A stretch of 64,000 nucleotides of DNA. It comes from Marsupella aquatica. Taxonomy: Eukaryota > Plantae > Marchantiophyta. Position 1 is the stretch's first letter. Each line of letters begins with the position of its first letter. Positions 2,925-64,000 of the stretch are shown in pieces. Below the pieces are notes generated by a model. That model was not told the DNA's origin. It searched no databases and saw nothing but the letters and a program-made list of their open reading frames with translations. The stretch spans positions 832,515 to 896,514 of the forward strand of contig OZ316897.1 of assembly GCA_973895155.1 (NCBI GenBank), read 5' to 3'. The position numbers and the translations under genes are program-made.

Positions 2925-3435
2925 TCTTCATGTATTCCCGACTTGTTTCCCTATATGTCATTGGCTAGTTACATCGTGTGAAGTCTAGTTAATTAACTCT
3001 TCTCAGGTGGTACTATTTGTACCCTTGGATCATTTTAAGATGATTTGCCATCGACACCATTAGATCTTCGTGGGTTGTGAAGGTGGGGATTACAATTTCC
3101 CGTCTGCTTCCCTACATGGCATTGGCTAGTTGCACTATGTCTAGTCCACCTAGTACTCCCCAGGTGGTACCATTTGTACCCTTGGATCATTTCAAGATGA
3201 TTTGTATCGGCACCATTAGATTTCCATAAGATATGAAGGTGGGGAAAAGGGTTTCCCTGTGTTTTTCCTTACTTGTATTAGCTAGTCACACTGGATCTAG
3301 CCAGTTAGCACACCCCACGTGGTACCATTTGTATCCACGGATCATTTCAAGATTGTTTGCATCGGCACTGCTAGATTTCCATAAGTAGGTAAATCGGGGA
3401 TTCCAATTTTCCCAGTCTATTTCCCTATATGGCAT
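2925..3435. repeat. Degenerate tandem repeat, ~156-bp unit x3
   Basis: ggatcattt(t/c)aagat recurs at ~3027, ~3184 and ~3339 with similar flanks. Confidence 0.75.
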
Positions 3436-3766
3436 TCCCTCAACCGATAAGCTCATTCACATTCAGATCACTTCCTCTTTCCACATGAATTTTATGAAAA
3501 CCCCCGTGAAAACCATTCAACAATACATCGTGTCTAGCTAAACACAATTCATGAGATTGACATAACCATCTGTTCTGAGCATTTAATTAATTCATTAATA
3601 ACCTCATTCGAGTGAACACACAAAAGAAGATTCGCAAAGTAATCGTACATCATTATGGATTAAACCACAATCACACCAGCTGTAACAAAATTGAGCTTCA
3701 CTGCATGATATATGGCATCAAGTCAACCACTGAACCTACATAAATTAGCATGCTATGAAATGTGAA

Positions 3767-8494: not shown

Positions 8495-8514
8495 GCCGCT
8501 CGGCTCGCGCCCAA

Positions 8515-8750
8515 GAGTCCACAGTGTCCCATGCAGCTATGGGGAAAGGAGCATCTAGGAACCTGACAGGAAGGAACGCTAAAATAATTCATGCCCGACA
8601 ATGATAGAATTTATTTACTACGCTCGATCTTTTGTCTAGAGTCCACAGTGTCCCATGCAGCTCTAGGAAAGAGGAGCACATATCTAGGAACTTGACAAGA
8701 AGGAGCGCTAAAATAATTCACGCCTACAGTGACACGATTTAATTACTATA
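8515..8750. repeat. ~124-bp tandem duplication
   Basis: gagtccacagtgtcccatgcagct...gctaaaataattca at ~8515 and ~8639. Confidence 0.8.
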
Positions 8751-20615: not shown

Positions 20616-20619
20616 CTCT

Positions 20620-26600: not shown

Positions 26601-28348
26601 CATGGCAAGAGACAAGAGAGTGTTTGAATGCCCTGAATGGCACCACCATTGTGTGGCAATAGTTTCCAGCCAATCATTGGCTATAGAGTTATGGGATGGT
26701 ATGATATTGTCAGCGGAATCATATGCCTGCAAACAAATGGTGATCAGCAAAGGGGTTGGCATCGGGTCAACAAGAGTAAAGTTACATCATCAGTTATCAG
26801 TGTTTTCCATCAGTCGACCTGATATCAGTGGCCACGTCATCTTAGAGAGGCCGCCAAGTTGGGGCGCTGAAAAAAAATGCGAAAAAAAAAACTTTTGCGC
26901 ATCTCAGCTGGGGCATCTCAATCTCAGCTGACCTCGCCGAGATTGGCGTAAGGCAAAAAAAAATGAAAAAAAAAATTTTAATTTTTTTCCCAAAAATTCT
27001 TTAAAAAAAAAATTCCCCAAAAATATTTTTTTCACTACGGGTGTCCGTACCGTACGGACACCGCATATCGGCGAGACCCGCCGAGATAGTTCGATGTCCG
27101 TACGGTACGGACACCAAATTTTGTCGGAATTTTTTTAAAGATTTGTTTTTTTTTGAGAATTTTTGAAAAAAAAAATTTAATTTTTTTTCTTCGTTTTTTT
27201 TGTCCTTACGCCGATCTCGGCGAGGTCAGCTGAGATTGACTCAATCTCAGCTGCCCCAGCTGAGATCCTTACGCCGATCTCGGCGAGGTCAGCTAAGATG
27301 CGCGAAAGTGCGAAGGCCCTATCTCAGCTGCTCAGCTGAGATTCAGAAATTTCAAGGCGACCAAACTGATAACTGATGATCCTCGCTACCCCGGTCAACA
27401 AGGAAGAAGTCAGAAAAACTCAGGACCTCAACTTCTCTATCAATAAAGCAATGTTGGACAGATGCTGGAGTTCTCGTAGACGGCAGTGAGCACATGAGTG
27501 ATACTTGCACTCCTTTGCGAGCAGCTGTGTGGAAGAAACAAGTCTACAGGCCAGGAGATCACGTGGTGGTCCTAGTGGATGGGAGTACAGACGTGACACT
27601 TCCAGAGAATTGGAAAGCAATCATTCGGTCAATTTTCATGCATGAATTCATGGGCTGCATGGAAATATTTTTTGAGGCATACGAAGAAGATCAAAGAGGG
27701 AATTCCTTGGCTTGGGCTCGTGATGAGTATTCTCTGTTTACAATTCTGGAACCAAAGTTACTACAATATCCTGGAAATAATTGTCGAATGCTATCTAGAA
27801 TTATACACAAGTTTTTTCCACTCCAAAGGGGCGCTGTTGGTGATGGAGGGGCTAGAGAGATTGTAGCCATGGAGATCGGAGATACTCTACTTAGAGAGCT
27901 TCCAGTCAATCTTGCAAATTGTCCTCCTTTCCCAGAAGTGGGAGACATAATGACCGTAAGAGTAAGAACAGCCCTTGATGTACAGAAAGAGGCCGGAAAA
28001 GAGACCAAGCTCTGTGTCATCAGGGAGGTCATCCTTCCATCTGAGGTGGAAACTACAACAGAAGCTGAAGCAATTCACGCTAGTGCACCAGAGGATGCAC
28101 TAGATGAAGTAGAGTTGAGAGATCACATGTTTGAAGAAACACCCAACGACCACCAGTTTCAGAAGGACTTAGGTAGAGTTAAGGTAAGCTGGTTGAATAT
28201 AGTAGGTGCCCGTTCAGAAACTCCAACTTACAAAGCTTCTCCACGAATTGAGGCAGAATTTGGATTTGAGGCACTACTTCAATTGAGGGGAGAGTTTATT
28301 TGCATTCAACAATGGCATGGTTATCCTGTGAGGTGGCAAATAGTATAA
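23652..28348 (+). pseudogene. CACTA/EnSpm (TnpD/Tnp2-type) transposase pseudogene
   Basis: Motifs CTC..KC, WWDG, GDPRNIGL..HWDGFQ, FLEPFIRELEEL..DGI, LRA.L..FTGDHPAQCK..G, C..C, YDTMH.L.L, FKAEE and GP....WCYRFER. Introns 24933-25027 and 26178-26329 (GT-AG). In-frame TAG at 24063-24065. Interrupted by the insertion at 26788-27378. Confidence 0.88.
26788..27378. mobile_element. ~591-bp non-autonomous foldback/MITE-like insertion, apparent 2-bp AT TSD
   Basis: Ends catcagttatcagt and actgataactgatg, flanked by AT on both sides. Long internal inverted arms and ggtgtccgtaccgtacggacacc palindromes. Interrupts the CACTA coding sequence. Confidence 0.85.
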
Positions 28349-45025: not shown

Positions 45026-48000
45026 AGCCGGGGGTATGCCCTGTGCACGTCATCTAGGAGAGCAGATGATGTGTGGATTCTTGATTGTGCTTGCTCTTTT
45101 CATATTTGTTACATTCGTGAGTTTTTCAGTTCTTACTCTGTTTCAAACGGTTCAGTTCTGATGGGAAATGATCACTCCTGTCAAATTGAGGGAATTGGGT
45201 CTGTGAAGATTCAAATGTTTGATGGCGCTGTGCGCACAGTGTCCGGAGTCAGGTATGTACCTGGCATGCGTAAGAATCTGATTTCACTCGGTGTGTTGGA
45301 TTCAAATGGTCATCAATGGAGCGTTATTGATGGTGAACTTCAAGTCAGGTCGGGAGAGACAGTGATTTTGAAGGGGAGTAGACAAAAGAATTTGTATGTG
45401 TTACAGGGCAATACTGTATGTGAAGAGGCCAATGTAACCAAGTCTCACGAGGAGATGACTCAACTGTGGCATTCATGGCTAGGCCACATGAGTGAGAAGG
45501 GTTTGGCTATCTTACGGAAGAATGGACTCATTTCTGATTTGCAATCTTGTAAATTAGAGTTTTGTGAGCATTGCATTCTTGGAAAGCAGCATCGTCGTGC
45601 TTTTGGTGTTGGAACTCATCGTTCCAAAGCGGTTCTTGAGTACATACATAGTGACGTGTGGGGTCCATCCCTGACTCCCTCACACTCTGGAAAGTTGTAC
45701 TATGTATCATTTATTGATGATTACTCAAGATTTGTGTGGATTTATTTCATGACGCATAAGTCTGATGTCTTGTCCATTTTTAAGAAGTGGAAGGCCCAGG
45801 TGGAGAATCAGACTAGAAACACGATCAAGTGTTTAGATACAAGGGTGAAGAGTCTGAGGTCAGACAACGGCGGGGAGTACACTTCAATGGAATTTGAAGA
45901 GTACTGTTCAGAACAGGGGATAACTCGCCATCTCACCACAGTTTATACTCCGCAGCAGAATGGTGTCGCTGAGAGGCTCAATCGGACACTGTTGGAGCGG
46001 TCACGAAGTATGTTGAGCCAATCAGGTTTACCACAAGAATTTTGGGCAGAAGCTGTCAATACCGCAGCTTATTTGGTAAATCTTTCTCCTTCTAGTGCTA
46101 TCAATTTCAAAACGCCGTTTGAGATGCGCTATAAGCGGCAAGCAGACTATCATGGCTTGGTAGTTTTTGGAAGTGATGCATATGCTCTCACACCGAAGCA
46201 GAATAGGACCAAGTTGGATCCTACCTTCAGGAAATGTGTTTTTCTTGGGTACCAGAGTGGTGTGAAAGCCTATAGGCTATGGGATCCTATTGCCTGTAAG
46301 CTCGTTGTCAGTAGGGATGTTTCCTTCAATGAATCCAGATTATTGAAGGAGGGGGAGAATACTCAGGTCTCCCGTACTGACAAAGGAAAATCTCCTATCC
46401 CGGATCTCATTGAGGGGGAGATTGGTTATGAGGTGCATGACCGGAGAGAAGGAGTTGCTCCAATTATGGAGCTGGTTCCTGTGCCAGAGGAACCAGAGGA
46501 GTTTGTTGATGCTGGTGAGCAGCAAGTGGATGCTGTTGAGCTTCAAATTGTACCAGCACACGCAGATCAACCGGAGTCATCGGCTAGAAGAACATCTGGT
46601 CGCACTGTACGCGCTCCACCAAGGTATGGACAGTGGGTTGATTCATCTCAACTGCAAGAGGATGATTTTACAGCTGATGATGAGGGTGATGCGTTAATTT
46701 TGGAAGAAGGGGAACCTTCTTCATTTCATGAGGCAAGTGCTTCAAAGGAGAAGCAGAAGTGGACTGCAGCAATGCAAATGGAGATGCAATCACTAAAGGA
46801 CAACAAAACTTGGGAGCTTGTTAAGCTGCCTAAGGGTCAGCAAGTGATGGACAGCAAGTGGAATTACAAGTTAAAGGATAATTCCATAGGAGGTGGATCG
46901 AAGGTCTACAAGGCTAGATTGGTAGCAAAGGGATTCACACAAGAGAAAGGTGTGGATTACAATGAGGTCTTCTCACCAATTGCTAAGTACTCTACAATAC
47001 GACTATTGTGTGTACTTGTTGTAATATTTGGTCTGCTGCTAGATCAGATGGATGTTGTCACAGCTTTCCTCTATGGCACATTGGAAGAGGTGATCTTCAT
47101 GAGACAACCGCTAGGTTTTGTGAAGAGAGGACAGGAGGAATTGGTTTGCAGATTGCTGAAATCCTTGTATGGGTTGAAGCAGTCACGAAGACAGTGGAAC
47201 AAGCGGTTTGACGATTGGATTCGGTCACAAGGTTTTCACAGAAGTGTATTTGACCCTTGTGTGTATTTGAAACCGGTAAAGAATGTTGTCTTTGGGTTCA
47301 TTGTTTTAGTACTTTATGTGGATGATATGCTAATTGCAGCCAAGGATAGGTCTGAGATTGTTAAGCTCAAGGCACTGCTTAGTGCAGAGTTTAAGATGAA
47401 AGACTTAGGGCCAGCTAAGAGGATTTTGGGTATGGAGATCACTAGGGACTTGGAGGTTGGCAAGCTATGGTTGACGCAGAGCAGTTATGCGAGGAAGGTA
47501 ATTGCAAGGTTCAACATGGGGAATAGCAAGCCAGTAAGTACCCCGTTGGCTCCACACTTCAAGTTATCATCAGCGTTCTGTCCTACGGATGACACAGAGA
47601 AGGGGTTGATGTCAAAGGTTTCGTATGACAAGGCAGTGGGGAGTCTCATGTATTTGATGACTTGCACTAGACCTGATCTTGCCATGGCTATGGGCAAGGT
47701 GAGCAGGTACATGTCGAATCCAGGGAAGGTACACTGGGAAGCAGTGAAGTGGATTATCAGGAGATCAACAACAGGATACGTGTTCACACTTGGCGGTGGA
47801 TGCATAAGTTGGAGGTCTACTTTGCAGAAGTGTATTGCTCAGTCTACTACAGAAGCGGAGTATGTTGCAGCTGCGGAAGCAGCAAAGGAAGCGATTTGGT
47901 TGGATAGACTTATCACTGAAATGGGATTGCCACAGGGGAATGTGAAGCTCCATTGTGATAGTCAAAGTGCGCTCCACCTTGCTGTGAACCAGGTGATGGA

Positions 48001-48187
48001 CAGCAGAGTGAAGCACATTGACGTTAGGTACCATTTTATCAGGCAAGCTGTGTCTGATAATTTGTTTGAGCTAGTCAAGATTGATGGTAAACTCAACCCG
48101 GCTGACGCATTTACCAAAGTGATTCCTTTGGAGAGTTTCTCTAGACACCGTGACGTATTGCAGGTTTTGCAATTGCATCACAAGTAG
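45026..48187 (+). CDS. pol: Copia Pol (PR-IN-RT-RNase H), in frame with gag after a TGA; internal in-frame deletion at the RT/RNase H junction
   Basis: WILDCACSFH; WH..LGH..C..C; HSDVWG, SDNGGEY, NGVAER; YVDDML; CDSQSA. WIIR is joined directly to RSTTGY. Confidence 0.93.
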   Translation, partial: SRGYALCTSSRRADDVWILDCACSFHICYIREFFSSYSVSNGSVLMGNDHSCQIEGIGSVKIQMFDGAVRTVSGVRYVPGMRKNLISLGVLDSNGHQWSVIDGELQVRSGETVILKGSRQKNLYVLQGNTVCEEANVTKSHEEMTQLWHSWLGHMSEKGLAILRKNGLISDLQSCKLEFCEHCILGKQHRRAFGVGTHRSKAVLEYIHSDVWGPSLTPSHSGKLYYVSFIDDYSRFVWIYFMTHKSDVLSIFKKWKAQVENQTRNTIKCLDTRVKSLRSDNGGEYTSMEFEEYCSEQGITRHLTTVYTPQQNGVAERLNRTLLERSRSMLSQSGLPQEFWAEAVNTAAYLVNLSPSSAINFKTPFEMRYKRQADYHGLVVFGSDAYALTPKQNRTKLDPTFRKCVFLGYQSGVKAYRLWDPIACKLVVSRDVSFNESRLLKEGENTQVSRTDKGKSPIPDLIEGEIGYEVHDRREGVAPIMELVPVPEEPEEFVDAGEQQVDAVELQIVPAHADQPESSARRTSGRTVRAPPRYGQWVDSSQLQEDDFTADDEGDALILEEGEPSSFHEASASKEKQKWTAAMQMEMQSLKDNKTWELVKLPKGQQVMDSKWNYKLKDNSIGGGSKVYKARLVAKGFTQEKGVDYNEVFSPIAKYSTIRLLCVLVVIFGLLLDQMDVVTAFLYGTLEEVIFMRQPLGFVKRGQEELVCRLLKSLYGLKQSRRQWNKRFDDWIRSQGFHRSVFDPCVYLKPVKNVVFGFIVLVLYVDDMLIAAKDRSEIVKLKALLSAEFKMKDLGPAKRILGMEITRDLEVGKLWLTQSSYARKVIARFNMGNSKPVSTPLAPHFKLSSAFCPTDDTEKGLMSKVSYDKAVGSLMYLMTCTRPDLAMAMGKVSRYMSNPGKVHWEAVKWIIRRSTTGYVFTLGGGCISWRSTLQKCIAQSTTEAEYVAAAEAAKEAIWLDRLITEMGLPQGNVKLHCDSQSALHLAVNQVMDSRVKHIDVRYHFIRQAVSDNLFELVKIDGKLNPADAFTKVIPLESFSRHRDVLQVLQLHHK

Positions 48188-48798: not shown

Positions 48799-51027
48799 AT
48801 ATGGACATGTGTGCCAACCATATAGTGACATGTGTCCTTGGCATTTTAGGTACCCTTGCATAAGATTAATGTGACATGTATTTGATAAGAGCCTTATTAC
48901 TAATATTGTGATGAATGTATATACATGGATGTTGCCTACTTTAAAAAATATTATAAAAATTAGTTTACATTACATTAAAAATACCCTTGCGTTGTTCGCA
49001 CGTCCTCCCTGCATTAGTAACACTGAGGGCCCAGGGGTGACGCGCTCTGAACCATAACTTATTTGCGAAGCTGTTGTCTTGACAATTCCGTTGCCATTCA
49101 TATGGTATCGCATAACTGCGTTAGTCAGGGTGTCACACAATTGCGGAACCAAAAGTATTGCAATGTTCCAATACTCAATGTATGGCAAGTTTGCGATAGT
49201 ATGGCATTCGCATGTGTTTCGCAAGGATAGTTTGAGGGCTGGGTTTTGTATATTTGGGTTCATAATTGGGTTGGGGTCTTATTGCTCCACATGAAGATAC
49301 CAAAGCAAAACTTTATATATGCCAAAAATCCCTGAATGTACAAAAATTAGGGTTTTCTAAAACCCTATGGGGTATCAAATACCAAGACACTGTCCTTTGA
49401 CTAATCCATATGCCATATGGAGTGAACTACATCTGCATCCTCTAGAATGGAGCCCGCCTACTCCTCTTTGCTGGCCTCTTCCCCTTGTCCTTCTTGCTTT
49501 GGGCGGGACGAGCTGGACGGGAGGGGGGTGGTGGTGGTGGTGGCGGTGGTGGTGGTGCCTGCTGCTCCTCCCCATCTGGCTCATCCTCATCATCGTCATC
49601 ATCGTCATCATCATCCTCCTGGTCTCCTGGTGTGCTAGGTGTGGCAGCACTCCCTGCCCCTCTGGACCCACTCGTGGTGGCCCCGGTAGTGTCCCCATCA
49701 TCAGCGCCGCTATCCTCCTCACTGCTATCCTCACTCCCCTCCTGCTCCTCCTTATCCTGCTTCCATGTCACAAGGTTAATTCGGGTTTAGGGTTAATAGG
49801 AAAAATGTATAAACCTTATAAATGGAATGGGTGCGGGTTTAGAAAGGGTACTACAAATCACTCACACTAGCCAACTCTGCATCAACCAACTCAAAGAGAT
49901 GTCTGGCCCCATGCTCTGCCCCTATCTCCATCTCCTTTGTTGTTATCTTGCGGCGGTACCTCTTATACTACCACAAAAAAATGAAACACCAAAACATAAG
50001 GGGCCCGGGTTAGTAACTAAGGGTACTTAAGCAAAAAAGGAATCCTAAAAAGGGTAAAAAGGGTACCCTAACCAGAAAAAAACCCCATTACCCTAACAAA
50101 TATTTGTCACTCGACACTAAACGTTTTTCAAAATGAAACAAGCTTTGCGAAACTCCCACCTTCGCAAATTCAAATATATTTAAGTTTGCGAAATAGACTG
50201 CGAATCGGATTGCTTCGCAATGGCTTCGCAAACCTTACGGGAAAAAGGTTATAATAGAGTTTGCAAAACAATTGCGAGGCAACCCGCTTCGCAATTGTTT
50301 TGCAAACTGTGCTTTTAAAAAAATCCGAGAAATGGCTAAGGCACGCAATGTGTCAGGGTGACCTAAAACGAAAGGGGAGGCCATAAGGGGTAAAGCAGAG
50401 GTCTGCGAGGGGCATTGCAGGCAAGCAAACAACAATTGAAGGCGAAGGAAAAGAAGCAGGGGAGGAGGGGAGAGGACTCACGAAGGTTGCTTTCAGGCCG
50501 GGAAGTCCACCTTGCCCCATCTTGTGTGTGGTCTTGGGGCATTTGCTGACTCGGTCTGCTGCAAGGATGAACTTCTGGGGTGGTGTCCCCACTTCATCCA
50601 CGATGTGCTGCAGCTGAGAGACCTTCTCAGCCAATGCCTTGAGGTCTTTGTCTGACTTCCCGGCCTGAAGTGCCTTGGCCTCCTTCTCCTTCCAGAATTG
50701 GAGGTCCTTGGCTGCTTTCAGCTGCACCTCGACCTTATAGAACGCGTTCCACACATTCTCTAACACAATTTTGGACCGACCGAGAAGTGTGTCGGAGTTC
50801 TCGTTTAGCCCGATCCCATTTTTTTTCTAAGGCAATGCAATGACCGATAAAACTGGCAAAAACTCTCCGAAACGCCACTTTCCTCCATTGCATCGCCGCG
50901 GGAATGCAGGGAGCGATACGTGCATCGGGTTTTACATTCCGTTAGTGAAAAAGTCCAAACTGCGAGTAACTTGGTCCAAACCGCGTAATCCAGGAACGAC
51001 CACGCACTAACCCAGATAAAAGGGAAA

Positions 51028-51080
51028 CTTAACCATGGTTAAGGGGAAATTAACCATGGTTAGAGCATCTCCTATATAAA
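51028..51080 (+). promoter_or_regulatory. Duplicated TTAACCATGGTTA palindromes followed by a TATA box
   Basis: cttaaccatggttaag at 51028-51043, ttaaccatggttag at 51050-51063 and tatataaa at 51073-51080, upstream of the plus-strand cargo ORFs. Confidence 0.45.
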
Positions 51081-51673
51081 GAGGAGCGGGCTGCCCATAA
51101 AACGTTTGCTATCGCCAGAGCAAATATCTCCTGACTGAGAGCGAATACCAAACTCCCATCAAGTCTTACATTCCTCCCAAGCGATTCGACTCTTTCTACC
51201 GAAAACCCGATAAATTTATCGGAACAGCCATTCCTGTTCAAGTTCTCCATGTAAGACTAACTAGTCATTTAGTGTAAAATGTCCAGATCCGAGCGGACTG
51301 CGATAAATTTATCGCATTTTGCATTCCTCTGTTGCAATCATTTGATCCAGTGTTTAGAGAGGTGTTGCCTTCATTCCGATAAATTTATCGGAGTCTCCAT
51401 TCCTTTCATGGAAAGAGGAGTAATTGAGAATCCGATAAATTTATCGGAGTTGTCATTTTTGTGAAAGATTGAATTCAGGGCTTAGGTGTCTGAGGAAGTC
51501 ATATTTTCAATTTGAATGCGGAGTGCGATAAACTTATCGCATCCTCCTGTGAGAATCATTTTCCTTTGTTTTGTTTGGAGACTCATCTTCATCTCTGATG
51601 TCGCAGTGTTGTTGGGTTTAGGAGGCACAACGAAAGGTCGATTGCACTCCGTGGACAACAGGTATTGTGACAA

Positions 51674-52003
51674 ATGGCTGTCTTCCTTGAAAATCGTGTC
51701 AAACGTGCACGCCGGTTGTACAAGAGACTCGTGCGACTCAAAGTTCTCCCCATCGGTATAGGAGCATTGTGGATGGGTGGTACTGATCCTGGAGATAGGC
51801 AGAATCCTCTCCGCATTGAATTCTGCGGAATGAATGATGCAGGAGTTCCAATTCGTTCGAGGTTGATGTTAACGGCGTATTTACATTCTTTGGAGTTTTC
51901 TTGTAACTATTGTTGTCGTCGTCTTGACAACAAGTACCACAAACAGGCTCACTTTTGTTGTAAGATTTGGAACGAAGACCCTTGGGTGAACCTTTCACGA
52001 TGA
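51674..52003 (+). CDS. Small hypothetical cargo protein (109 aa)
   Basis: ATG-initiated, co-oriented with the other cargo ORFs and lying between palindrome clusters. Cys/His-rich C-terminal half. No homology recognised. Confidence 0.3.
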   Translation: MAVFLENRVKRARRLYKRLVRLKVLPIGIGALWMGGTDPGDRQNPLRIEFCGMNDAGVPIRSRLMLTAYLHSLEFSCNYCCRRLDNKYHKQAHFCCKIWNEDPWVNLSR

Positions 52004-52197
52004 GTGTTTTGACCTTTTCATTGAGGCGCGTCTTGGAAGGACATATTTAAATAAACAAGTCCTACCCTTGCGCAGCGAATATAATACGTCACGAGTCCTA
52101 ATCGTTAAACTGTCGTGCAGGGTTGGTACTGTGGATGTGTTCGGTTACACCTGGTGATTGAAGGTATTTTTATTGGTGGTTTTGGTAGCTCTGCTTC

Positions 52198-52746
52198 ATG
52201 GCTGCATCGGAGAATCTAATCGTTGCAAAGATGGGATCCGTTTTAGCCCATGAGCGTAGGAAATATATTCGAGGAAAAGTGCCCGGTGTGGAATGCGGAA
52301 GTTTGTTGAATGGACTTCCCGATGAACTCGTTGAATCTCACATTTGGCCCCTCCTAGCCTTGTCTTGCACACAAGATGAACACCTTGGCCTTGACCTAAA
52401 ACTTCTACCAGAAGAACGACTGACTCGAATGAGAACAATCATTTGTCTTGGAGCCACCTCGAAGAAATGGAACCATCTTGTTGTTGGTACACGATTTTGG
52501 GCGCTATTGAAATATGCAATTCGTGAGATCAATGACATAAACAAAATGCTCGCAAGCATTCCTAATGCCGACCTTCTCTCAAACCTACATATTGCTAGGG
52601 TCTTCCGAGAGGAAACTCATTTCCTCCCTCCCATAGATATGCTTGGGTGCTTTTCGTATGAGCAGTTAGATCAGATTCGTAGAGTTTGGATAAATCTTGG
52701 AGAAAGCGGGAAGCGGACAATTCTTGCATGGCATGGACGAGTCTGA
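52198..52746 (+). CDS. F-box-like protein (182 aa)
   Basis: LLNGLPDELVESHIWPLL...ICLGATSKKWNHLV matches the F-box pattern LP.E/D(L/I)...I...L ... V(S/C)K.W..L, with an insertion. Confidence 0.65.
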   Translation: MAASENLIVAKMGSVLAHERRKYIRGKVPGVECGSLLNGLPDELVESHIWPLLALSCTQDEHLGLDLKLLPEERLTRMRTIICLGATSKKWNHLVVGTRFWALLKYAIREINDINKMLASIPNADLLSNLHIARVFREETHFLPPIDMLGCFSYEQLDQIRRVWINLGESGKRTILAWHGRV

Positions 52747-53038
52747 GTGGATGAGGCATTGCAGCAAACATCCGATAAATTTATTGCACTCCTCATTCCT
52801 CTAGTCGATTTTGGGTGCTTGTAAAGAAACACTTTGAATATAATTGACTCTCCCTCCCCTGACTTCGGGTTGTGTGGTCCAGAGTGTATTTTTTTGCGCC
52901 TCTTCGGACGATTAGCTGACAAGTGCATTGGCTTCACAGCCCGTTATACAAGGTACTGTAAAGTTGGATGACACTTGTAGAATTGTAATTAGTATGTTCT
53001 CCAAAATTTATTCCTGATTTCTATTCGGTGATCAGGCC

Positions 53039-53752
53039 ATGCTCGAGCGACATATTTTTGTACCCTACCCGGATCCTCCAGAATGGGGGAATGGAGCCAT
53101 GCTGGACCAGCTAAGGAGGCTGGATGAGTCACTAATTTTAAAGATATGCAGGCTGGTAGTAAAACCGTTTTACCATAACGCATTTCACTTCTACGTAGAT
53201 CAGGTAGGGGGAGAAATTTATATTCGGTGGGATAGATATGTTGGATTTTCTAGAAGAGTTATCCTACTCTTTCTGAAAACCGGTGCAGTAAGACTTTTTA
53301 TACTCCACTGCTGTCATGTTGTGAAGGGCAATCCTGCTTATGAGCCAAAATTCTATGCCGACAACAGACGTAGAGCATTCGATGAGATTCAGGATGTGAT
53401 TGACGAGCTGGACAATCCTCTTGCCACCGAGTTTTTTATTGACACTGGTGGGAAACTATATTCATACAAGATTCGTCAACTCCCCCACCAGCCGGTCTGT
53501 GGGCTCTTTAACTTGATCTATGTAAGTTGCCTGTGGACGAATGTCCTTGCCAATGGTGAGATCTGTCCATGCTGCACAAATGCTTGTTGTGACATTCCGT
53601 CACACCGGTATTCAGTAGCAGTAGTGAATCCTGAGACTGGTGAAGTTGATTTCCATTGGCTGTGGGCTTATGATCATCGCGTCACTCATATTCCCCAATG
53701 GCCCAAGAAGCGGATCGAACGCTTTGCTCTGGCGAGGTTCAACTATGATTAG
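53039..53752 (+). CDS. Hypothetical cargo protein (237 aa) with a CPCC..CC..H cluster
   Basis: Uninterrupted 237-codon ORF with globular composition, between palindrome copies. Confidence 0.6.
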   Translation: MLERHIFVPYPDPPEWGNGAMLDQLRRLDESLILKICRLVVKPFYHNAFHFYVDQVGGEIYIRWDRYVGFSRRVILLFLKTGAVRLFILHCCHVVKGNPAYEPKFYADNRRRAFDEIQDVIDELDNPLATEFFIDTGGKLYSYKIRQLPHQPVCGLFNLIYVSCLWTNVLANGEICPCCTNACCDIPSHRYSVAVVNPETGEVDFHWLWAYDHRVTHIPQWPKKRIERFALARFNYD

Positions 53753-53790
53753 GGTTTAGGTTTAGGGGTTAAGGTTTTGGATTTAGGGTT
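53750..53790 (+). repeat. Short degenerate plant telomere-like (telo-box) tract
   Basis: tagggtttaggtttaggggttaaggttttggatttagggtt, ~230 bp upstream of the MTase gene. Confidence 0.6.
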
Positions 53791-54017
53791 CCGTAGCTGA
53801 TTCTTCGACCTGTACACTCGGCTGTCAATTTAAAGAAGGCTCACTTTTGCGATAATTTTATCGGTCTCTTTGTCCTTGTGTGATGAGATGTCATGTCCAC
53901 ATGTGCTGTGAGATTGGCGGCAATAATTTTATCGCTCTTTGCATTGGAATTTGTTTATTTGCAGACTTTTCCATGGCTGCTAGTGGATAGAGTGGATCTA
54001 CTAAGGCAGAAAGTCTC

Positions 54018-57000
54018 ATGACAAGCCTCACCAATGCAATTTGGACAAGTGAAGACATTTGTGAAGAGGTCAAGTGTATCAAGAAGTCATGGTACTTCTG
54101 TGACGCCAGATTACAGTCCACGGGTTTCAAAGACTGTGCTACCCCAATCCTTTGGGTCCAGTTGCAAAAATCGGCGAAGGTTAATGTTTCGTATGGCCCT
54201 GTCATTGCCGTTGCCGTCGTCGAGTTCATGGTTGGCCACGGGGAGGGAAAAGTGTTGACAGAGGGCCTTAGTTTCTTGACAATGTGTGGGCGCAAGGGTT
54301 TCACATCTCTCATTGTTACTCTCGATAACTTTGATGAGAAATCGATGGACAGTTATCCAGAAGATCCCCTTGTTGCCGATGTTCGAGCAGCAAGAGAGAT
54401 GAATGTTATGGGTTCGGCTTGGATCGGCCAGTATGTGCAAGATTGTGATGCCATCATGCTTCCAAGGGTGAACGCAGAGTACAAGAGACTTGTGGGTGAA
54501 GAGTTCAAACCTGTCCGCAAAATTGTTTTCAAGAAACCAGGTTCAAGTGGCAGCGGTGGTTCTAATGCCGATAAAATATCGGGGCGGAAAGAACCATTGC
54601 AATCCTCTACACATATTGACGTGGACGAACCTACAACTTCTGGTTGGGTTTCGGGAAGTGGAAAAGGGAAAGGGAGAGGTAGCGGCAGGGGAGATGCCGC
54701 GGGAACCTCTGACGGTGGGAAGAAGAGCCAGGAAACTGGCGGTAGTGGGAGAGGCCGGGGCAACCGTCGAGGACCATCCGTTAAACCAAGCGAAAGTAAA
54801 GGATCCGAGGGATCCGGGCCATCTGGTTCTGGACTTAGCACAAAGAGGAAGAGGATTGGCTGGACTGAGACAGTGGCTGCAGAAGTGGATAGAGCTCCGT
54901 CAATTCCATCAGTTCCAGTCGCGGTTCCTGTGGCGCCATTGGTAAGTACTACGTCGTTGTACTGTTTAACAAACACGAAATCCGATAAAAATCTCGCTGT
55001 TTATTTCCTGAATTGCGGATTGTGGAGTTATGTTGAACAAATGCGAACTCCGATAAAAATCTCGCAGTTTCTTTCCTTAATTGAATTTGCAACACTTTTG
55101 TAGGCTGATCAGGAGGAGGAGACGGCTCTTTCAATGTATGAGACGGACGCGATCAAGGTAGAGCTCAGTCTTCTGATGCAACGAAGGGTGCAAAGGACAA
55201 CTGTGCTTCTGCATGTCGACAATCTCATATTTGATGAGGAGGGGGATTTGTCAACTTTGATTAGACTAGTGGATAGATTGCATGTGGAAAATATCAAGAT
55301 ACTTCTCATGAAAAACCCCACCAACTTCAGTGCCCCGTTCGTGTTGTGTGTGGATCCGAAGGATTGTCCCACAACCATAGATTGGGACATCCTGAAGTCA
55401 AGGGTATGGAAGTATAGAATTATTGGAAGGAATCATGGTGCTCAGGCAAAGTCCGAGTTGTTTAAAATGTACGGGAAGCAAATATATGGTGAGCTGGAAG
55501 CTTGGGTTTACGCTGGGCTTTTAGAGATCCGAGGTCCGAAAGTTAGGCTTCCAGCATAACTATGACCAGGAGTATCGGAAGAACATGACTAAAATTGACC
55601 AAGTTCGCGCTTGTCACAATATTTTCCTTGAAATGGGTGTGGGCTCGACTAAAGATGTCCGCGAAGCATGTTGTCAAGAATGCATGATGGAGTACACGCC
55701 AGGAGTTCGTGACTCCATGGCCAAACATGATCCGGCTTTCCAAATTGCTTTCCGAACAGGTGAAATTTGGGATCTTCAAGAGAAGATTTTCCAGATGTGG
55801 GAGAAAGGTATTGTCTTAGGACAACCCAAAAAAATTGTGGCAACGACGAACGCAAAGGGAAAGGTAAAACCTTTGACGGTAAGGGAGATTAAAATGAATA
55901 AACTTGCTGGTGACCTCAACTTAAATTCATTTCGAGGTCTCCAAGGACTGTCAAATAAGAAGCATGTCAAGCGTCTCTTGAATAGGGTTATCGGGAAGGT
56001 GATCACTTTGGATCAAATGCACAAGGAAGGTGAGAAGTTGAAAAAGCTTGCCAAGGTGAAGAAACTATTTTTGCAGATATCTGGTCAGCCAGATTGGGCA
56101 ACATGCAGAGAAATGTTTCCCAACGAAACAGATGTCTCGGTCCTTGGCATATGGGCGGAGAAATTGAGTGACGCGGTAAGCATTCCTCTCACAGCATGCT
56201 CTATCGTGAGATTTTTATCGGCTTTAGCATTCCTTTGTTGGTTTCTAAGCGATTCCATCTATTGGCTAGCGTGCTCCATCGCGAGATTTTTATCGGCTTT
56301 AGCATTCATCTCACGCTATTCTAACTGTAGATGTGTCTGACATTCTTACAGCTGAAGATTAATTCAAAAAGGAAAAGCAAAGTGGTTCCGGCTGTCACTT
56401 ATAATTCTGCGGGGGAGGTTATTGTTCCCTCAGCTGAAATCCCTTATGTGTTTAAGAATTTTGTGCTTGCTGCAATTGATAAGTACAATCGGCTGAGGTC
56501 CTTAGGCGAGGGCACAGCAGAAGCGTTTGAACAAACATGGAAAAATGCAGACAGGGATTCTTTTCCCTACTATCTCCATGTTGGTGATGTTCAAATTTTG
56601 GATTCTTTTGTTCAGCCAAGGGCTTACAGCCTTGCGGTTGCGGATATTCCGTATGGTTTTAATGCTCCTGGTTCGGAGTTTGATGAAGTGGCCTTCACAG
56701 AAAAGGACATTTTAGACATGTTGACAAGTTTCTCAAAGATGACGACCGCTAAGCAGTGGAGGTTTGTTGTGATCCATTCACTACAACAAACGCATATGGT
56801 GATGTCTGCACTGGAGAGTGTATGCAACTATGGGGTCGAGGCTAGAATCTGGGAGAAGACTAACATTCATGAGCGTCCCGCTGGAGTTCGATTGGCGTGG
56901 GGTTTTGAGAACTGGTCGATAGGTTTCTATAGCGAGGAAGGCATTCGGAACATGAACATGTACAATTTCCAACCGGATGAGTCTCGCGTCAATATCATCA

Positions 57001-57464
57001 AGGTTCCATGTGTAACCAAGAAGTCCATTGATCCGTTGGGATTTGTTGTGAACCCATATCAGAAGCCTGTTGGTTTAGGGGCTTGGTTTGTTTCCCATTT
57101 CTCTGAGAAAGAGGATTGGGTTATTGATCTTTGTTGTGGAACCGGATCGACATTAGCTGCTACGCTCCTCAATTCTCGCCAGGGTTGTGCTGTTGATAAG
57201 AGTTCTGCGCAGATTGGTTTTGTAAAATCCCGGATCATGATTCTGGAGTCAAACTGGAATTTATATGAAGAATCCCAGATTGAAGGGCACGGCGTTGAAG
57301 GTCATGAGATTCAACCACCAATTGCAGGCCAATTGGGTGTACTCGGGACATCGACTTACGTAGTTGAGGTCGTGAAGGAGACCGAAGAGGAACAAGAAGA
57401 AACTGAGGAAGAGCCTCCCAGAACACCAAATGAGGATGATCTCAACGACATGTTATTAGATTAG
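54018..57464 (+). pseudogene. Spliced ParB/Srx-like domain plus beta-class N6A/N4C DNA methyltransferase fusion (~1035 aa), with one +1 frameshift in exon 2
   Basis: Exons 54018-54941, 55104-56175 and 56352-57464; GT-AG introns, both phase 0. Exon 3 has LAVADIPYG (motif IV), WEKTN, NPYQKP and VIDLCCGTGST (motif I) in beta order. Exon 2 has PFVL...YRIIGRNHG..A (ParB-like). An extra C near 55530 shifts the frame. Confidence 0.85.
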
Positions 57465-57790
57465 TTGCGTGTGCTCGTTAGGATAATGTCAATCACCAAT
57501 GAAGTTGTCGATAAATTTATCAACTTCTGTATTCCATGAGGAAGAACCTTTGTCACATTTATTAATGCGATAAATTTATCGGACTTTGCATATATCAGAC
57601 TGTCGCGGTGTTCCTGCTGAGGGAATGGAGTTGTCGATAATCTTATCGGACAGCATTGTATTCTCTAACTGGTTTGTCATTGCAATTATTTAAAAAAAGA
57701 TATCATTATAGCTGCGGAGTACATAGTCCCAGAACGATAACCATTGTACATATTCATGGGAATGATAACCATTATAACTTAAACCTGAAA

Positions 57791-58865
57791 CTAGCTTCGA
57801 CTATTAACGACTACAGTCTCCATTGCATTTTGAATGATTCGTCTTGTTTGTATAGGGAGAGTACTATTTGCCAATAACGCAAAGTTATACGCATAAATGG
57901 CAGTTTCTGATAGGGATAATTCATCCTCCAGTACTTTGCTAGACGAAGCCTCTTTCTCCGGATAATATCTGCCTTCAATTGCAGACTCTTCCTCCGAATC
58001 CATTGCATACCAAGTGATTTTAATCCGCTCCGGGATGTCGTTAATTCTTGTGAGAATCTCAGTCACTTTTGCCATCCAGAATGGTCTTCCCTTGGGATCC
58101 TGATGGGCTGCTACACATATCATTGCAAATTTAGTATTCACCTCTAGATCCTTGAAGTCTCCAATTTCCGTGACTTTTCTTCGACTTTCGGAATACATGA
58201 CTGTCCTCACACCCGCTACTTTATCAACCAAGCTAGGTTCCATTGCTGCTTCCATAGGATTACTCGGAAGTTATCTCTGTACGTTTACCTTGGGCCAACT
58301 CCAATCAAAACTCCATTGTGCAGGTTTCAGGTGGTGCTGAATCACTTCTTTTTGTTTGTCAAAAAAACGACCCCACCATAGACGATCTGCATCGTCAAAG
58401 TAATTGAATCCATCTTCAATTGCTCTTCGATATTTTTGAAGAGTTGACAAATAACTTTGAGCCGCCCGCTCATCTTGTTCCTCAGCATCATTCTCTTGCT
58501 CTTCATTGTCTCCTATCGCTCCCGTGGCCGACTTCAATGCCATTTGTGGTGCGACCCACATTCCAGATGATGGAATGTACCGAACAAAATCCACCGTCTC
58601 CCCCCAATCGATTGTCGTTGAAAGATGTTTGGCATGGAATACGGACCGAGCACTTCCATCTTCGAGTACTCTAGTAATCCAAAATTGTTTTTGAGCACTT
58701 ATGCCGTGGAGAGTACGTAGAACCTGACCATCCATATCCTTGTCATTTGCTTGATCCTTGTCTGACACAAATTTCTTGAAATCGGCAACCTCGTCGACGA
58801 AAAATATCTTTGCCGTAGGATTGTAGGATTCCTCTATGATTGCTGAAAGAGTGTCCAACCGGAAA
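57791..58865 (-). pseudogene. C-terminal part of a Sola1-like (DUF7869-type) transposase with a terminal BAH/Tudor-like segment
   Basis: L..L..II..SYNP....VDEVADFKKF resembles the post-catalytic region of that family; RPFWMAKV..IKITWY near the end. One in-frame TAA at 58271-58273. The 5' part is cut off by the insertion at 58866, so the catalytic residues are not visible. Confidence 0.5.
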
Positions 58866-61800
58866 CTCGGGGGCCTCAGTATATAGAGACCCCCATATCA
58901 CGCTCGACGTTTTGGACCCTTGCACCCCTAACTTATTAAGTAAATTTTTTATTTCCCCTTCCCTATCATACTTAGAAGAATTCCAAATCCTAACATTTTG
59001 ACCCCTAAAAATAGTTAAGTAAAGTTTTGTTGTGAATTAAACACCCCTTAGTAAGAAAAGAAAAGTTCATTCAAATGCGCACCTTATCTGGGTCTTTGTC
59101 AAGCTTATTTGAACCCTAATGTGCTCCTTAGGCATCCATATCTCATGGAAAACTGATAGTATATAGTGTTGATGCTTCCACTAAGAATACCAATTCTAGT
59201 AGAAGCTTCAGCAATATACAGTATGAGTTATTCATATTGCAATCTGCTGTGCTTGTCTGATGTGAAAGGTAGGTATACCAAAAAGGAATTGAGTCAAGAA
59301 TCTGAATGGTGAGTGTCCGTGGCAGAGGGGAATTGAACCCCTGATTGAGCAAGAAGCTCAAGTATCCAAATCTGCCACCCCCTAGCCTATTCCCCTAACC
59401 TATCCCCTATACATACTAAAACCACTACCATGACTATTGATGCATGAAAATCATTCAACTCTAGACATGGTCTCCAAATAAGTATCCAAAGCTTGTTTAT
59501 CAACTCGATCTATCACATACACTAAACCAATCCCTTGTTTCATGGTTAAAGTAACATTAGTCATCACCATTTCTATATCAATCCATTGTAAATCAGTTGT
59601 ATCATAAGTGAATTCAACTTTGCTTGAGCTTGTTGGCTTATACCAATTGAACAAGAACTGACAAATACTCCCTACGTGTCCATGAGGAGGTGTTGGTCTG
59701 TCAAGCAAATCAATAGCAGATCTCACTCTAGTCCATTGTCCTTTAACTTTTTGTCTCATCATCATAATCCGACCAAGCCAAAATTCTTTCTTTGCTTGCA
59801 CTACTGGCTCTTGAATCCTAGATTTACCTCTTCCCTTACCTTTCCCCTTTTTTGATCTTGTAGAAGGGCCTGTATCATTAGCACTTTCAAATGCTACTCC
59901 ACAATCACTCCCAACATCAACAAAACAAGTCACAGTATTCGGATCACATTGTTTCCTCTTACCAAGATTATAGTATGCCACTTGCTTCACCCTTGTCAGC
60001 CTATCTTTAGACAAATGAGGGTTGCCCACTAGTTGACTCACCAAAGTTGATTTGTAAATTGTTCTGCCCTCATATGTAACTGTAGGCAAAACCTTCTTCT
60101 TTTCCTGTAGAGGGCTCTGAAAAGACTGTGTAAACTCAGCTACAACAGAAGACAACACATGACGAACCTCATGCCCCAAAGTATCTACCTCCACAGAATG
60201 AGGTTCTGGTATGTCTAACTCAACCCCATCCTGCAAAACATCATCAGGAATGGTTAGCTCATCTGTCAACCATGCATCAATTCGATTTAGATCTTCCTCA
60301 GGGTCTTCAAATTCATGAAAATCTCCTTCTGGACGAGGTCCAATTGGAGATCTGTGCTCTACATGCTCTTCAGAATCGTCAACAATAACTGCCTCTGCTA
60401 TTATAGCTGAATCTGGCCATGTCTGAACTTCCACATCCCAAGGGTGAGTCCACCATCGCTTTCTTGCTGCTAGCAGATCACTTCTGGGAGACATTTGTAA
60501 CCTTCTAAGAAACTCTCTTGCTTCTTCAAAACCTTCTTTCAAGGCTGCAACCACCAACTCATTAGTTTGCACTTTAGAGTAATCAAAAAGATTAGGTGCA
60601 TCTTCACCTTCAAGTAAAGGATGAAGCTTGGCCCATACATGATCTTGCTTTTTATGTGATCGAGCTACTTTCAAGCCCTCTGGTCCACATTCTAATCCAG
60701 CAAGACGATTTAACCCAACAGCACTGTCCAACAAGGAGCCAAAATCATAATTCCTCTCATGGCCACTCATTCCACCTACTTTGCTGAAAAATATCTCACA
60801 ACAATCAGAACCTAACTCATGAAATGGAATACACAAGTGAGAAAACTTATCACGAAATGCACATATAAGCAATACAATAAATTGACATGACATGTTAACA
60901 TCATGAAAAGCCTGGATTGAAATCATATTTCTCTCTATATGTGAAACAACATTTCCACCTACAGCATGATCACCATACCTCAACCACAACCTCCACAATC
61001 GAAAGAACCAAGAAACTTTGCCTGCCAGCTTCACTCTAGTCCTCAGGTCATGTCTCTGGGAGTAGAAAATGTCAATATAGTCTGCACAAATCTGCAGATA
61101 CAACTCTGTCCCCGAACTTCGTTCATGCAACAGATCAATTCTTCCATGCAGATCTGCTAAACAGTCATGCACCTTTTCTGATGCTATCCTTTGGGGACCA
61201 GCCCAGATTTGACGGTCGGATCTGTTCACATCATCCCAATTCAATCCATGTTGATAGATTGGATAGTTATTGTACACATTACAAACATGAAATAGGGAAG
61301 CATGTTGGTCTCCAAGTGCCATTATTGAGGACACTCGATCTAGTGGGTTAATCAACTTTTTCCCATTGTGAGGCTGGTCTTGATCACCAAAACCATACAG
61401 GTCCCCATTAGGCAATATGGCAACTGAGTAAGGCCATCCTTCCCACCCTACAGAAAACCTAGGGTAAGACCCATTAGCTCCTCTGTAATCTTCTAACATC
61501 AATTTCCTGCGCCTTGCATCACCATCACTAGCATGCCCAAGCAAAGGACCTACAGAGTCTCTGCAATGCAGATCCCAAGATTCTTTCAATTGCTTCCAGT
61601 GCTCTCTAACCCATTATGCCTTGAACTTGTTACATGTTGATATAGCACAGAGGGCCAACTTTGGCATTCCAACATGCAATGGATTCACAATGACAACTCT
61701 AGCATACATTCCCTTGTTAAAATCCTCAAATGTATTTACAATCTTGTTATAGCCATCCTCACCATCACCTACAAGAATTTCTAATCCAAATTCACAGGTA

Positions 61801-64000
61801 TGCCCATCCTTATGGCCACAAAAACCAATCAGAGTGTCATATTTGGCCTCCCACCTGCAGAGAGCCAATTTCAAATGAAAACCAAGTCAATTTCAAAGAA
61901 TTGGTAAAACTATGCATCACAAATAATCTTCACCTTCAATTGCATCATTATGTGCTATAATATGCAAACATACCTTGGGCTTTCCTTGATCCTAGTTTCA
62001 TCCTCTGCAAGCATGACAGGTACATGTCCTTCAATTCCCAACATCTCCTTTGCAGTAGACAGAATTCGAGCCACCTCCTTGAATGTTTCTGGCCTAATTC
62101 CAACACGAAATTGAACAAATTTTGCTCTATCTCGTTTTAGTGTCTTCAGGCTTGGCCCAGCTAAGTTCCTTGCAAAAACATGGGCCACCTGCCGGCCCTC
62201 ATATTGAAACATAGCCTGAGCTATGGCTTTTGTTTTCTGACTATAACGAAACCCCCTTGCACTTCTCTCCAAATTTCTACCTACATCTTTCAGAAAATCC
62301 CACAGACCTTCTTTTCCACCAAATGCACCATTCCTATGACCATTGACTATACTCCTTAGGAAAAGTCTCAAATCTTTTCTGTCTGCAGCTACTCCTAACA
62401 GTTCTTGCAATTTTCTCTTCCTAGTACTAAGGGCACACACTTTCTGAGTTTGTAATGCCAACAACCATCTCTCTTTTCTTCTCTTGACATTGAGACCATG
62501 CATCTGTGTGGTCAACTCTGGACGTGTCAAGTAGCATGCATTCAAACCACCCTCTGTGCTTCTTTCCCCTCTCTTTGCTAAAGCCTTCGCTTCCTTGTGC
62601 ACCCGCCCACGAAAGTCATCTTCTAGTGTTATAGCATGACATCTACTGCAAGTTAAGTTCAGAAACCCCCCACCATACAAGGACAGCCTACAACATTGTT
62701 TATGCCTAAATAGTCCTTCTATATGTACAATAGAATTTGTATTAGGATTGTAGACATCAACAGAGACTGTGGCATTTACATCCCATACATGTCCTCCATG
62801 CTGATCCTGTAAGATACCCTTCACAACATACTTCACATTCTTCCACTGTACATATTCATCCCATATTCCCCAACAGAGCAAACTTAGGCCCATATCAATG
62901 TCTACAGACCCACCTGTGCCAGAGCTGCTGCTTGCATTGGAAGCATCCTCCTTGAAGAATTTTAAAATTGAATTCTGTGAAGGATGTTGATCCCTCTCAT
63001 CTGGCTTCCTTGGTCTGCCCCTCTTTCCAGATCTCAATGCAAGTTCAGCAGTATTCTCTCTGGCTTCAACTACATCCAGGTGACCCCGACTGACCAAGTG
63101 TGTCCTCAGGTTGTGATCCAAAGTCCCCTTCTTACAAACCAGATCCATGATTGCCCCACAAACCTTACACCTGACCTTATACAGGAACCACTTGTTTGCA
63201 TTATTGGCTAAACCAGGCACAGGGGGCACATGAAATAGCTCATCATCACCTCCACACTCAGCATTCAAATTCTGTACTATCTCTAGGCCAGTTGCTATGG
63301 CCCCCTCATAATCAAACTCAGGCTTTTGTGCAAGATCTGAGGGCTTCACTCCAATCATAGCAATTCCCCTTCTCCTACAGTAATTGTCTTTGTGTTTAGC
63401 AAAGGCAAGGTGCTTGGTCTTAAAATTGCTAAACAGATTAGCAATTGACTTCTTATCTTGGGAATTGTCTGCCCTCCCATAGATAACTCTGCACTCAAGA
63501 CACTCTAAATGGCCTCTCACATCCTGTCCTTCATCCCACGTACGAATTCTCCAATTATGATTTTCATAACCATTCTTTTGAACCCACTTCTCTAGTCTTA
63601 TAAATTCATCATTCCAAACTTTGACAGCTGCCTTAGACATAAGAATAGACTCAAAAGAAGCTCTCACAGGGGGAGCTTCTTGCAGTTGTTCACCTTGGGA
63701 AGAGTCCATTGCAACTGATTGGGTGACAGCAACAGAAACCGATGGGAACTCTGTCCCAACAGTCGGCAAGGATCCAATTTGTTCAATGACAACAACTTTC
63801 CCATCCAATTCAGACAGCTCAGTCATTTTCTCACTCTTGACCTTCATTCGACCAGGAAGCCTATAATCCCAGAAATCAAAATCAAAATCAACCAAATCAG
63901 GAATTCGATTTCGAAAATCAGCTAAAGTTTGACCTTCTTTGAACGCCAACACAGCTATTGGTTCTTCATCTTTCCCATAAGTCACCACATCCCTTTTTTT
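58866..64000 (-). mobile_element. P-element-like DNA transposon (3' terminus and transposase), continuing beyond the window
   Basis: Terminus ctcgggggcctcagtatat is homologous to the MITE end at 262. It interrupts the neighbouring transposase. Confidence 0.8.
59451..63988 (-). pseudogene. P-superfamily-like transposase (~1470 aa), 2 exons, single nonsense codon
   Basis: Intron 61855-61973 joins ..EDETRIKESPR|WEAKYDTLIGFCG. In-frame TAA at 61614-61616. Motifs EDET (D), SDGD (D), DQPHNGKKL.N (D..H) and GSDCCEIFFS (E). N-terminal C2H2-like fingers and an RGRP AT-hook. Confidence 0.78.

Follow-up and report, generated by a model that had tools for sequence, protein, structure and literature searches.

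Can a transposon that encodes a ParB-like protein fused to a DNA methylase, and that carries a palindrome of its own throughout its non-coding DNA, mark its own copies? This question is raised by an element in a stretch of 64,000 nucleotides from Marsupella aquatica (Marchantiophyta; contig OZ316897.1 of assembly GCA_973895155.1, positions 832,515 to 896,514), hereafter called the window, in which positions are counted from the first letter. An earlier note, made from the letters alone, had described here a cassette of open reading frames (ORFs) that includes a spliced ParB-like/methylase gene, lies convergent on a transposase and has one palindrome family in its intergenic gaps and introns, and we find every one of these parts in its place (Table 1). 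The segment 50762-58867 is the decayed remnant of one copy of a high-copy DNA transposon, a dead member of a cut-and-paste family of streptophytes, and makes neither the methylase-fusion protein nor the transposase. The best overall explanation, which in our judgment is evenly balanced between right and wrong, is that such dead copies belong to a family whose ParB-like/methylase protein marks its own copies via the palindromes.

The ParB-like/methylase gene has three exons on the forward strand (54018-57464), with canonical splice sites and fitting codon phases. Each exon pairs with a separate ORF of an intact relative on a metagenome contig, L001: exon 1 with 472-1050 (33% identity over 195 residues), exon 2 with 1436-2512 (53-58% identity), and exon 3 with 2749-3849 (58% identity). 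The exons, and both pieces flanking a frameshift in exon 2, were searched individually and not as the joined spliced protein. For the N-terminal domain encoded by exon 1, no family was found in Pfam and related searches, and an Atlas search gave no usable match. The frameshift consists of one extra base in the T-run at 55519-55523. At this T-run, the main copies in X2 and X3, two of four public runs (X1-X4) from two organisms, read CTT TCG AGA, in frame, with Ser as in AGLSKRE of L001, and the main copy in X1 has an in-frame TAG at the same position. The window copy has decayed, but its family includes intact relatives. The earlier note had stated that this copy is mutated, which the frameshift and an in-frame stop in the transposase confirm, and that activity would come from sister copies; most of those in X2 and X3 are free of the frameshift.

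In exon 3, motif IV (ADIPYGF) precedes motif I (DLCCGTGST), which is the order of beta-class amino-methyltransferases. The Pfam profile N6_N4_Mtase (PF01555) gives 23.7 bits for the window copy (E 5.4e-5), under the cut-off of 26.7, and 34.8 bits for L001 (E 2.2e-8), over this cut-off, and phrog_67, a phage DNA methyltransferase profile, matches L001 across both motifs (E 2.6e-14). Motif IV reads D-[IV]-P-Y-G-F in 21 of 26 homologues (46-68% identity), the others being one DILYGF and fragments without this region, and the S-adenosylmethionine (SAM) motif D-L-C-x-G-T-G-S is found in 15 of the 26. Farther fusion proteins also retain DxPYGF. Every homologue covering motif IV has Asp there, the Ser of the N4-cytosine type (SPPY/TSPPY) being absent, and far members show weak matches to adenine-specific models of the CcrM type; together, these features favor N6-adenine over N4-methylcytosine (4mC). 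Judging from these motifs, the mark, if one is written, is more likely N6-methyladenine (6mA) than 4mC. Kinship with the 4mC enzymes of Marchantia was rejected on motif IV, which is DIPY here and TSPPY in MpDN4MT1 (10.1101/2021.02.12.428880). Between lineages, the methylase gene shows non-synonymous differences (pN) of 0.20-0.32 and synonymous differences (pS) of 0.71-0.86, the latter saturated, and the transposase shows a similar pattern; purifying selection has therefore maintained this accessory gene over the same length of time as the transposase.

Exon 2 is predicted to encode a ParB-type N-domain and a helix-turn-helix (HTH), belonging to the ParB/Srx superfamily, on the basis of a model of its L001 counterpart. 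The AlphaFold model of L001 1457-2437, made with an alignment of 19 relatives, has a predicted local distance difference test (pLDDT) of 80.5, and its best fold matches in the PDB are cytidine triphosphate (CTP)-bound ParB, Noc, and KorB, over about 280 columns spanning the N-domain and the HTH. Exon 2 of the window shares 54-58% identity with the modeled L001 protein. The top rows of the Foldseek search are ParB 6sdk_A (E 5e-6), Noc 7nfu_B (template modeling score, TM, 0.54), ParB 6t1f_B (0.57), and KorB 8qa9_A, and sulfiredoxins come next, with the N-domain alone. Pfam reports no ParBc on this part and HTH_ParB at E 0.038 and 14.6 bits, below the cut-off of 22.6; a weak match (E 0.22) links GDLNMGHWRALQGL... 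with the stretch of Spo0J that follows its HTH. When two copies are modeled together, they pair through their N-domains, as in a homodimer, at 0.53 versus 0.00 for the best of 3 controls, with at least 67% contact agreement between runs and a partner pLDDT of at least 74. In calibration, the homodimer mark was reached by 21 of 30 same-chain pairs and 0 of 23 single chains from microbes, and by 17 of 29 and 0 of 30, respectively, from eukaryotes. The model's memory of ParB dimers may be the source of this pass. The CTP boxes are lost: in the family consensus, GERR of box II (GERRxRA) has become GGNHxxxAK, and ENLQR of box III has become HNxDxxxR. Both Arg of GERR are gone, the His of GGNH is invariant in the family, and the window copy has GRNH versus GGNH in its relatives.

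An exhaustive HMMER search returned 143 relatives of the ParB-like part, several of them with a methylase at their C-terminus; the named ones belong to Chara braunii, Riccia sorocarpa, and Ginkgo biloba. The fusion is therefore old and streptophyte-wide. The ParB-like/amino-methyltransferase fusion on a transposon, as first proposed for this locus, is thus borne out, the ParB-like part at the level of a predicted fold.

The transposase of the window copy consists of two reverse-strand ORFs, 58271-58858 and 57791-58255, which form a single frame with a stop between them. Both match residues 164-515 of the L001 transposase (54% identity), which scores 172 bits on PF25273 (DUF7869). The core motifs DGMDQxKT, LDNTxxENKN, and GHTHxxIDQ are retained in relatives, and the window copy has lost the catalytic core together with a conserved N-terminal exon, keeping only the part after the core. 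The convergent transposase that had been described is therefore present and indeed convergent, but only as its C-terminal, non-catalytic two-thirds. A transposase model from a 5-sequence alignment had a pLDDT of 33, unusable for a search for the RNase H fold, and the transposase profile gave only a chance match in the PDB. The label "Sola1-like" for this DUF7869 transposase would rest on likeness to the element described in PMC12477816; in our literature search, DUF7869 was not mentioned in any paper.

Nine related loci were examined, seven of them with enough flank to assess linkage, and the methylase gene adjoins a DUF7869 gene in 7 of these 7, so that the proposed link between the two genes holds in other copies. 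The arrangement is convergent in L001, L005, L006, L007, L008, and the window, and divergent in Riccia (L002, Riccia sorocarpa CM100795.1) and in a metagenome contig (L003). We also observe a second DUF7869 gene in L002 (18543-21752), 5 kb downstream of the ParB-methylase gene and outside the span of the palindromic sites of this locus, which probably represents a related element in a copy of its own.

The 14-bp palindrome CGATAAATTTATCG, with up to two mismatches, occurs at 11 sites, all within 51208-57648, versus 0.14 expected, and the frame CGAT-N6-ATCG at 9 sites, versus 0.25 expected. When variants are included, among them CGATAAAAATCTCG, which both introns carry in opposite orientations, 16 of 16 sites are non-coding, although non-coding DNA makes up 28% of the element. 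No site of the CGATAAATTTATCG family occurs elsewhere in the 64 kb. These counts agree with the earlier description of palindromes marking the intergenic gaps and both introns, and of a motif private to the element. The sites are embedded in longer repeat units of 37-72 bp. About 10 of the sites (50914-57648) are followed by CATTCC after exactly 7 nt, and the site at 50914 is flanked on both sides (GGAATG-N7-palindrome-N7-CATTCC); the functional unit may therefore be about 40 bp long or bipartite. The window also contains a CACTA element with a palindromic repeat, a 108/216-bp tandem array containing GGGTACCC (core TTTGGGTACCCAAA) 17 times, located upstream of four forward-strand ORFs, one of which matches Transposase_21 (CACTA/EnSpm); array and ORFs occupy 20616-22600 and 24099-28348. 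The CACTA palindromes form a single subterminal block of 2 kb and are not dispersed.

Related loci have palindromes in similar places. L001 contains 22 sites of CGATACCGGTATCG, versus 0.01 expected, distributed over the region upstream of the gene, its two introns, the gap separating the 3' ends, the transposase, and the region upstream of the transposase. The motif is CGATGTTTTGATCG in L005 and L009 and CGAGACCGGTATCG in L006-L008; among close relatives, the arms CGA(T/G)A...T(A/C)TCG are common and the center is lineage-specific. The distant Riccia locus L002 has an unrelated palindrome, GTATGCGCGCATAC, with 22 sites within 3 mismatches at 3247-13531. Palindromy and placement are thus kept while the sequence changes, as expected for a dimeric binder encoded by the element, and lineage-specific palindromes in the same non-coding places would fit a sequence-specific binder of this kind. 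The helix corresponding to GHxRxL of ParB also varies: relatives with a CCGG center share GHW, the window (AATT) has NSF, and L005 (GTTTTG) has TNW. Two further observations concern single loci. L011 (250-1622 and 4285), from the same sample as L009, contains a distant ParB-like gene, P0047 (654 amino acids, aa), and an unrelated near-palindrome, TCAAGCCAGCTTGA, found five times upstream of this gene. L005 has two motif types, CGATGTTTTGATCG at the methylase gene and the 3' part of the transposase (5-5123) and CGATAC(C/T)(A/C)GTATCG near the 5' part of the transposase (6355-7302), which may reflect a recombinant element or a neighboring copy.

Elements of this kind are already published. The 21.5-kb Sola1-1_Ec32 of Ectocarpus encodes a 1104-aa ParB-like/DNA-methyltransferase protein opposite its transposase, and its authors propose that proteins of this kind bind the element that encodes them and modify it epigenetically (Genome Biol 2025, PMC12477816). 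Both systems combine a ParB-like part and a methylase in one protein, encoded within a large DNA transposon on the other strand from the transposase; they differ in host, a brown alga versus streptophytes (Chara, Riccia, Ginkgo, and this genome), and in size, 21.5 kb versus about 10 kb here, the proteins being compared by description. The paper on Sola1-1_Ec32 (PMC12477816) reports no palindromes, whereas the window family has them. In the red algae Bostrychia and Chondrus, the Plavaka accessory genes (PAG2/PAG3) include a ParB-like/2-oxoglutarate (2OG)-oxygenase fusion adjacent to inverted-repeat arrays (10.1101/2025.02.11.637652). The resemblance lies in a transposon-borne ParB-like part with a nucleic-acid-modifying enzyme, in the inverted repeats and in the idea of self-binding, and Plavaka has a separate N6A-methylase accessory gene. 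However, the fusion partner of ParB there is a 2OG oxygenase and that of the methylase a SET domain, the transposase is of the Plavaka/CMC superfamily, and the repeats form arrays beside the gene, whereas those of the window family are spread through introns.

Compared with bacterial ParB, Noc, and KorB (parS, NBS, and OB), the predicted N-domain and HTH, the predicted N-domain dimer, and the several 14-16-bp palindromes are alike, but a methylase replaces the C-terminal dimerization domain, there is no ParA partner, the gene is eukaryotic and spliced, and the CTP boxes are altered. The methylase shares with phage and bacterial beta-class N6-adenine methyltransferases (phrog_67; CcrM, M.RsrI) the order of motif IV then I, an Asp-type motif IV, and a SAM motif of the FxGxG type, and differs from them in having DIPY instead of DPPY and very low similarity to solved enzymes (E about 0.2 for M.RsrI). 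With VANC of the Arabidopsis VANDAL elements, there would be a functional analogy only, namely an element-encoded protein recognizing motifs accumulated in its own non-coding DNA; VANC is non-homologous, has neither ParB fold nor methylase, and causes loss of 5-methylcytosine (5mC) without writing a mark. MpDN4MT1a/b of Marchantia and N4CMT of bdelloid rotifers are likewise prokaryote-derived beta-class amino-methyltransferases in eukaryotes, but they have a (T)SPPY motif instead of DIPY and are host genes that neither include a ParB module nor lie in a transposon. A 2016 survey of eukaryotic adenine methylases contains no such land-plant clade, and our literature search found no paper on ParB-methylase transposons in land plants. 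A claim of novelty for this locus, a land-plant example of the kind, goes too far, as the same module and the idea of self-modification were published for Ectocarpus and red-algal Plavaka in 2025. What is added here is a streptophyte family, conserved catalytic motifs together with selection, dispersed intronic and intergenic sites, and a lineage-by-lineage change of these sites.

We hypothesize that the ParB-like part would bind as a dimer to the 14-bp palindromes of the element throughout the non-coding segments, and that this binding would place the fused methylase on members of the family. There, the enzyme would write an amino-methyl mark, more probably 6mA than 4mC. The element would profit from this mark because it either counters silencing by the host or distinguishes copies that have been replicated from those that have not, and the activity would be supplied by intact sister copies, not by the window copy. 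Dam methylation distinguishes replicated from unreplicated copies for IS10. That intact members are active self-targeted adenine methyltransferases, and that a ParB-like dimer at private palindromes gives all copies a 6mA (or 4mC) mark which the host otherwise does not make, so as to counter 5mC silencing or to time transposition to replication, is in our view a tentative proposal, on balance doubtful.

Several points weigh against this mechanism. The assignment of exon 2 to ParB comes from a predicted structure: the ParB-like part has no significant match in Pfam, NCBIfam, PHROGs, or phmmer, and a 19-sequence profile of relatives did not find ParB in the PDB. The replacement of GERR by GGNH makes parS-like clamp loading, with spreading or sliding, doubtful. 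Motif IV is non-canonical, the first Pro being replaced in DIPY. Co-variation between helix residues and palindrome center was rejected, as it predicted the CCGG type for P0032 (LGHWRG), but its contig L009 has the CGATCAAAACATCG type. Finally, the CACTA element has its own palindromic array, and private repeats alone are therefore not specific to ParB carriers.

An alternative is that the transposase binds the palindromes, as it does the repeats of CACTA, Mutator, and hAT elements, the ParB-like/methylase gene being a cargo that acts elsewhere or not at these sites. Family-specific short repeats for the transposase are common in DNA transposons, the 2-kb GGGTACCC array lies beside Transposase_21 ORFs in this same window, and the N-terminal exon of the DUF7869 transposase is conserved and Cys-rich. 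We nevertheless consider this alternative unlikely, given that sites also occur away from the ends, in the two methylase-gene introns, in a transposase intron, and between the 3' ends, that palindrome binding is the dedicated task of ParB, Noc, and KorB, and that the motif type on the methylase side of L005 differs from that on the transposase 5' side. Red-algal Plavaka, with a different transposase, also has a ParB-like gene and inverted-repeat arrays (10.1101/2025.02.11.637652); the presence of ParB-like genes beside such arrays in another transposase superfamily therefore ties the repeats to the ParB gene and not to the kind of transposase.

Another possibility is that the protein binds the palindromes but has a non-catalytic methylase domain, in which case it would be an adaptor, be it for VANC-like anti-silencing, for bridging or partition, or as a transposition assembly factor. 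The lack of the first proline in motif IV, the methylase Pfam scores near or under the cut-off, and the fusion of ParB to a different enzyme in red-algal PAG3 are all compatible with this idea. However, D-x-P-Y-G-F persists in 21 of 26 and D-L-C-x-G-T-G-S in 15 of 26 homologues despite identities of 46-68%, the non-synonymous constraint on the methylase gene equals that on the transposase, and far members match adenine-specific CcrM-type models, so we assign this possibility a low probability as well. Repeats without any protein partner, spread by slippage or recombination in non-coding DNA with lineage differences due to drift, are very improbable: the sites do lie within 37-72-bp repeat units and the break points of deletion derivatives do fall at repeat units, but dyad symmetry and the arms CGA(T/G)A...T(A/C)TCG are kept across lineages with saturated synonymous sites, and unrelated lineages have other perfect 14-16-bp palindromes at the same places, where drift would not keep palindromy.

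If the ParB-like/methylase module works as we propose, plant and algal transposons would own a sequence-addressed DNA-marking device, assembled from a partition protein of bacteria and a methylase of the phage type; the address of this device, the palindrome, would shift between lineages. Such a device would add a new level to the contest between transposons and the silencing by their hosts, and eukaryotes would offer a natural case of DNA methylation that is programmable and site-directed; in case of self-targeted 6mA or 4mC, land plants would have an epigenetic layer that belongs to the transposon. The model is directly testable, as cognate and non-cognate palindromes are defined in several lineages and naturally intact relatives exist. 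The surprise is limited, the locus being a dead copy and the idea having been in print since 2025.

Table 1 Features of the decayed transposon copy, in window coordinates.
Feature	Coordinates	Strand	Remarks
Retained transposon part	50762..58867		left, repeat-family junction; right, end of transposase homology
Six-site palindrome cluster	50914..51539		starts at 50914, 51208, 51301, 51377, 51433, 51526
109-aa ORF	51674..52003	+	no evidence of being a gene
F-box-like 182-aa ORF	52198..52746	+	unsupported
Palindrome CGATAAATTTATTG between ORFs	52773..52786		
237-aa Cys-rich ORF	53039..53752	+	narrow protein family of unknown function
Two palindromes directly upstream of exon 1	53850..53934		six sites at the same place in L001
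Exon 1	54018..54941	+	N-terminal domain of unknown fold, then Gly/Ser/Arg-rich linker
Intron 1	54942..55103	+	GTAAGT at 54942, AG at 55102-55103; two CGATAAAAATCTCG sites (54983, 55051)
Exon 2	55104..56175	+	ParB-like N-domain and HTH (predicted fold); frameshifted
Intron 2	56176..56330	+	GTAAGC at 56176, AG at 56329-56330; two variant sites in opposite orientation (56207, 56282)
Exon 3	56331..57464	+	probable beta-class DNA amino-methyltransferase domain, open frame
Three palindromes between convergent 3' ends	57509..57648		same place as L001 3918-4259
Transposase remnant	57791..58867	-	C-terminal part of DUF7869-type protein; in-frame stop 58271-58273

The three ORFs upstream of the fusion gene, none of which is found in L001-L008, fare differently. 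The 109-aa ORF, taken earlier for a gene of the cassette, has no match in Pfam or in related loci and loses this status. The F-box cargo also has to be withdrawn, since the Pfam match is at E 0.061 and 13.5 bits, under the cut-off of 24.3, and covers profile positions 18-42 only, and the 182-aa ORF has no homologues among 5.8 billion proteins. The 237-aa ORF, which has no Pfam match, is probably a real gene, as suggested by three homologues with 47-68% identity in Logan assemblies; as a member of the cassette it is thus upheld by existing homologues but not by L001-L008. Deletion derivatives joining 51334 to 52758, with breaks between two motif units, are found in all four runs and remove the 109-aa and F-box-like ORFs, which means either that these ORFs are a later insert or that the motif units promote deletions.

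The family is high-copy: in each of X1-X4, between 485 and 2015 contig pieces match 50762-56299, cargo region included, with identities of 85-100%. Contigs of X1, X2, and X4 track the window to 50761 and then diverge, and run contigs contain joints that link the internal positions 51546 and 55817 to 50762; this position is therefore the left end of the element, which had previously been placed at 50771 and now moves to 50761/50762. On the right, homology to the L001 transposase ceases at 58867. The window copy, which lacks its right end, yielded no terminal inverted repeats, and a weak candidate inverted repeat occurs in Riccia L002 only (2882-2906 / 13790-13814, 80%).

Beyond the right limit, 58868-64000, which adjoins the truncation point of the DUF7869 gene, contains two long reverse-strand ORFs (712 and 677 aa; 59451-63988) that have neither a Pfam match nor similarity to the DUF7869 transposase and belong to a different element. 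A tRNA-like appearance of 59320-59345 was rejected, as a tRNA search found none. The window, eukaryotic and plant-like in character, also holds a Copia polyprotein (45071-48187), the CACTA transposase, and spliced genes. The left flank, 50337-50761, which includes a 137-aa ORF (50353-50766, reverse strand), is itself a repeat with a contig depth of 363-616 in the same runs, and it continues differently in other copies; the element is therefore nested in another repeat.

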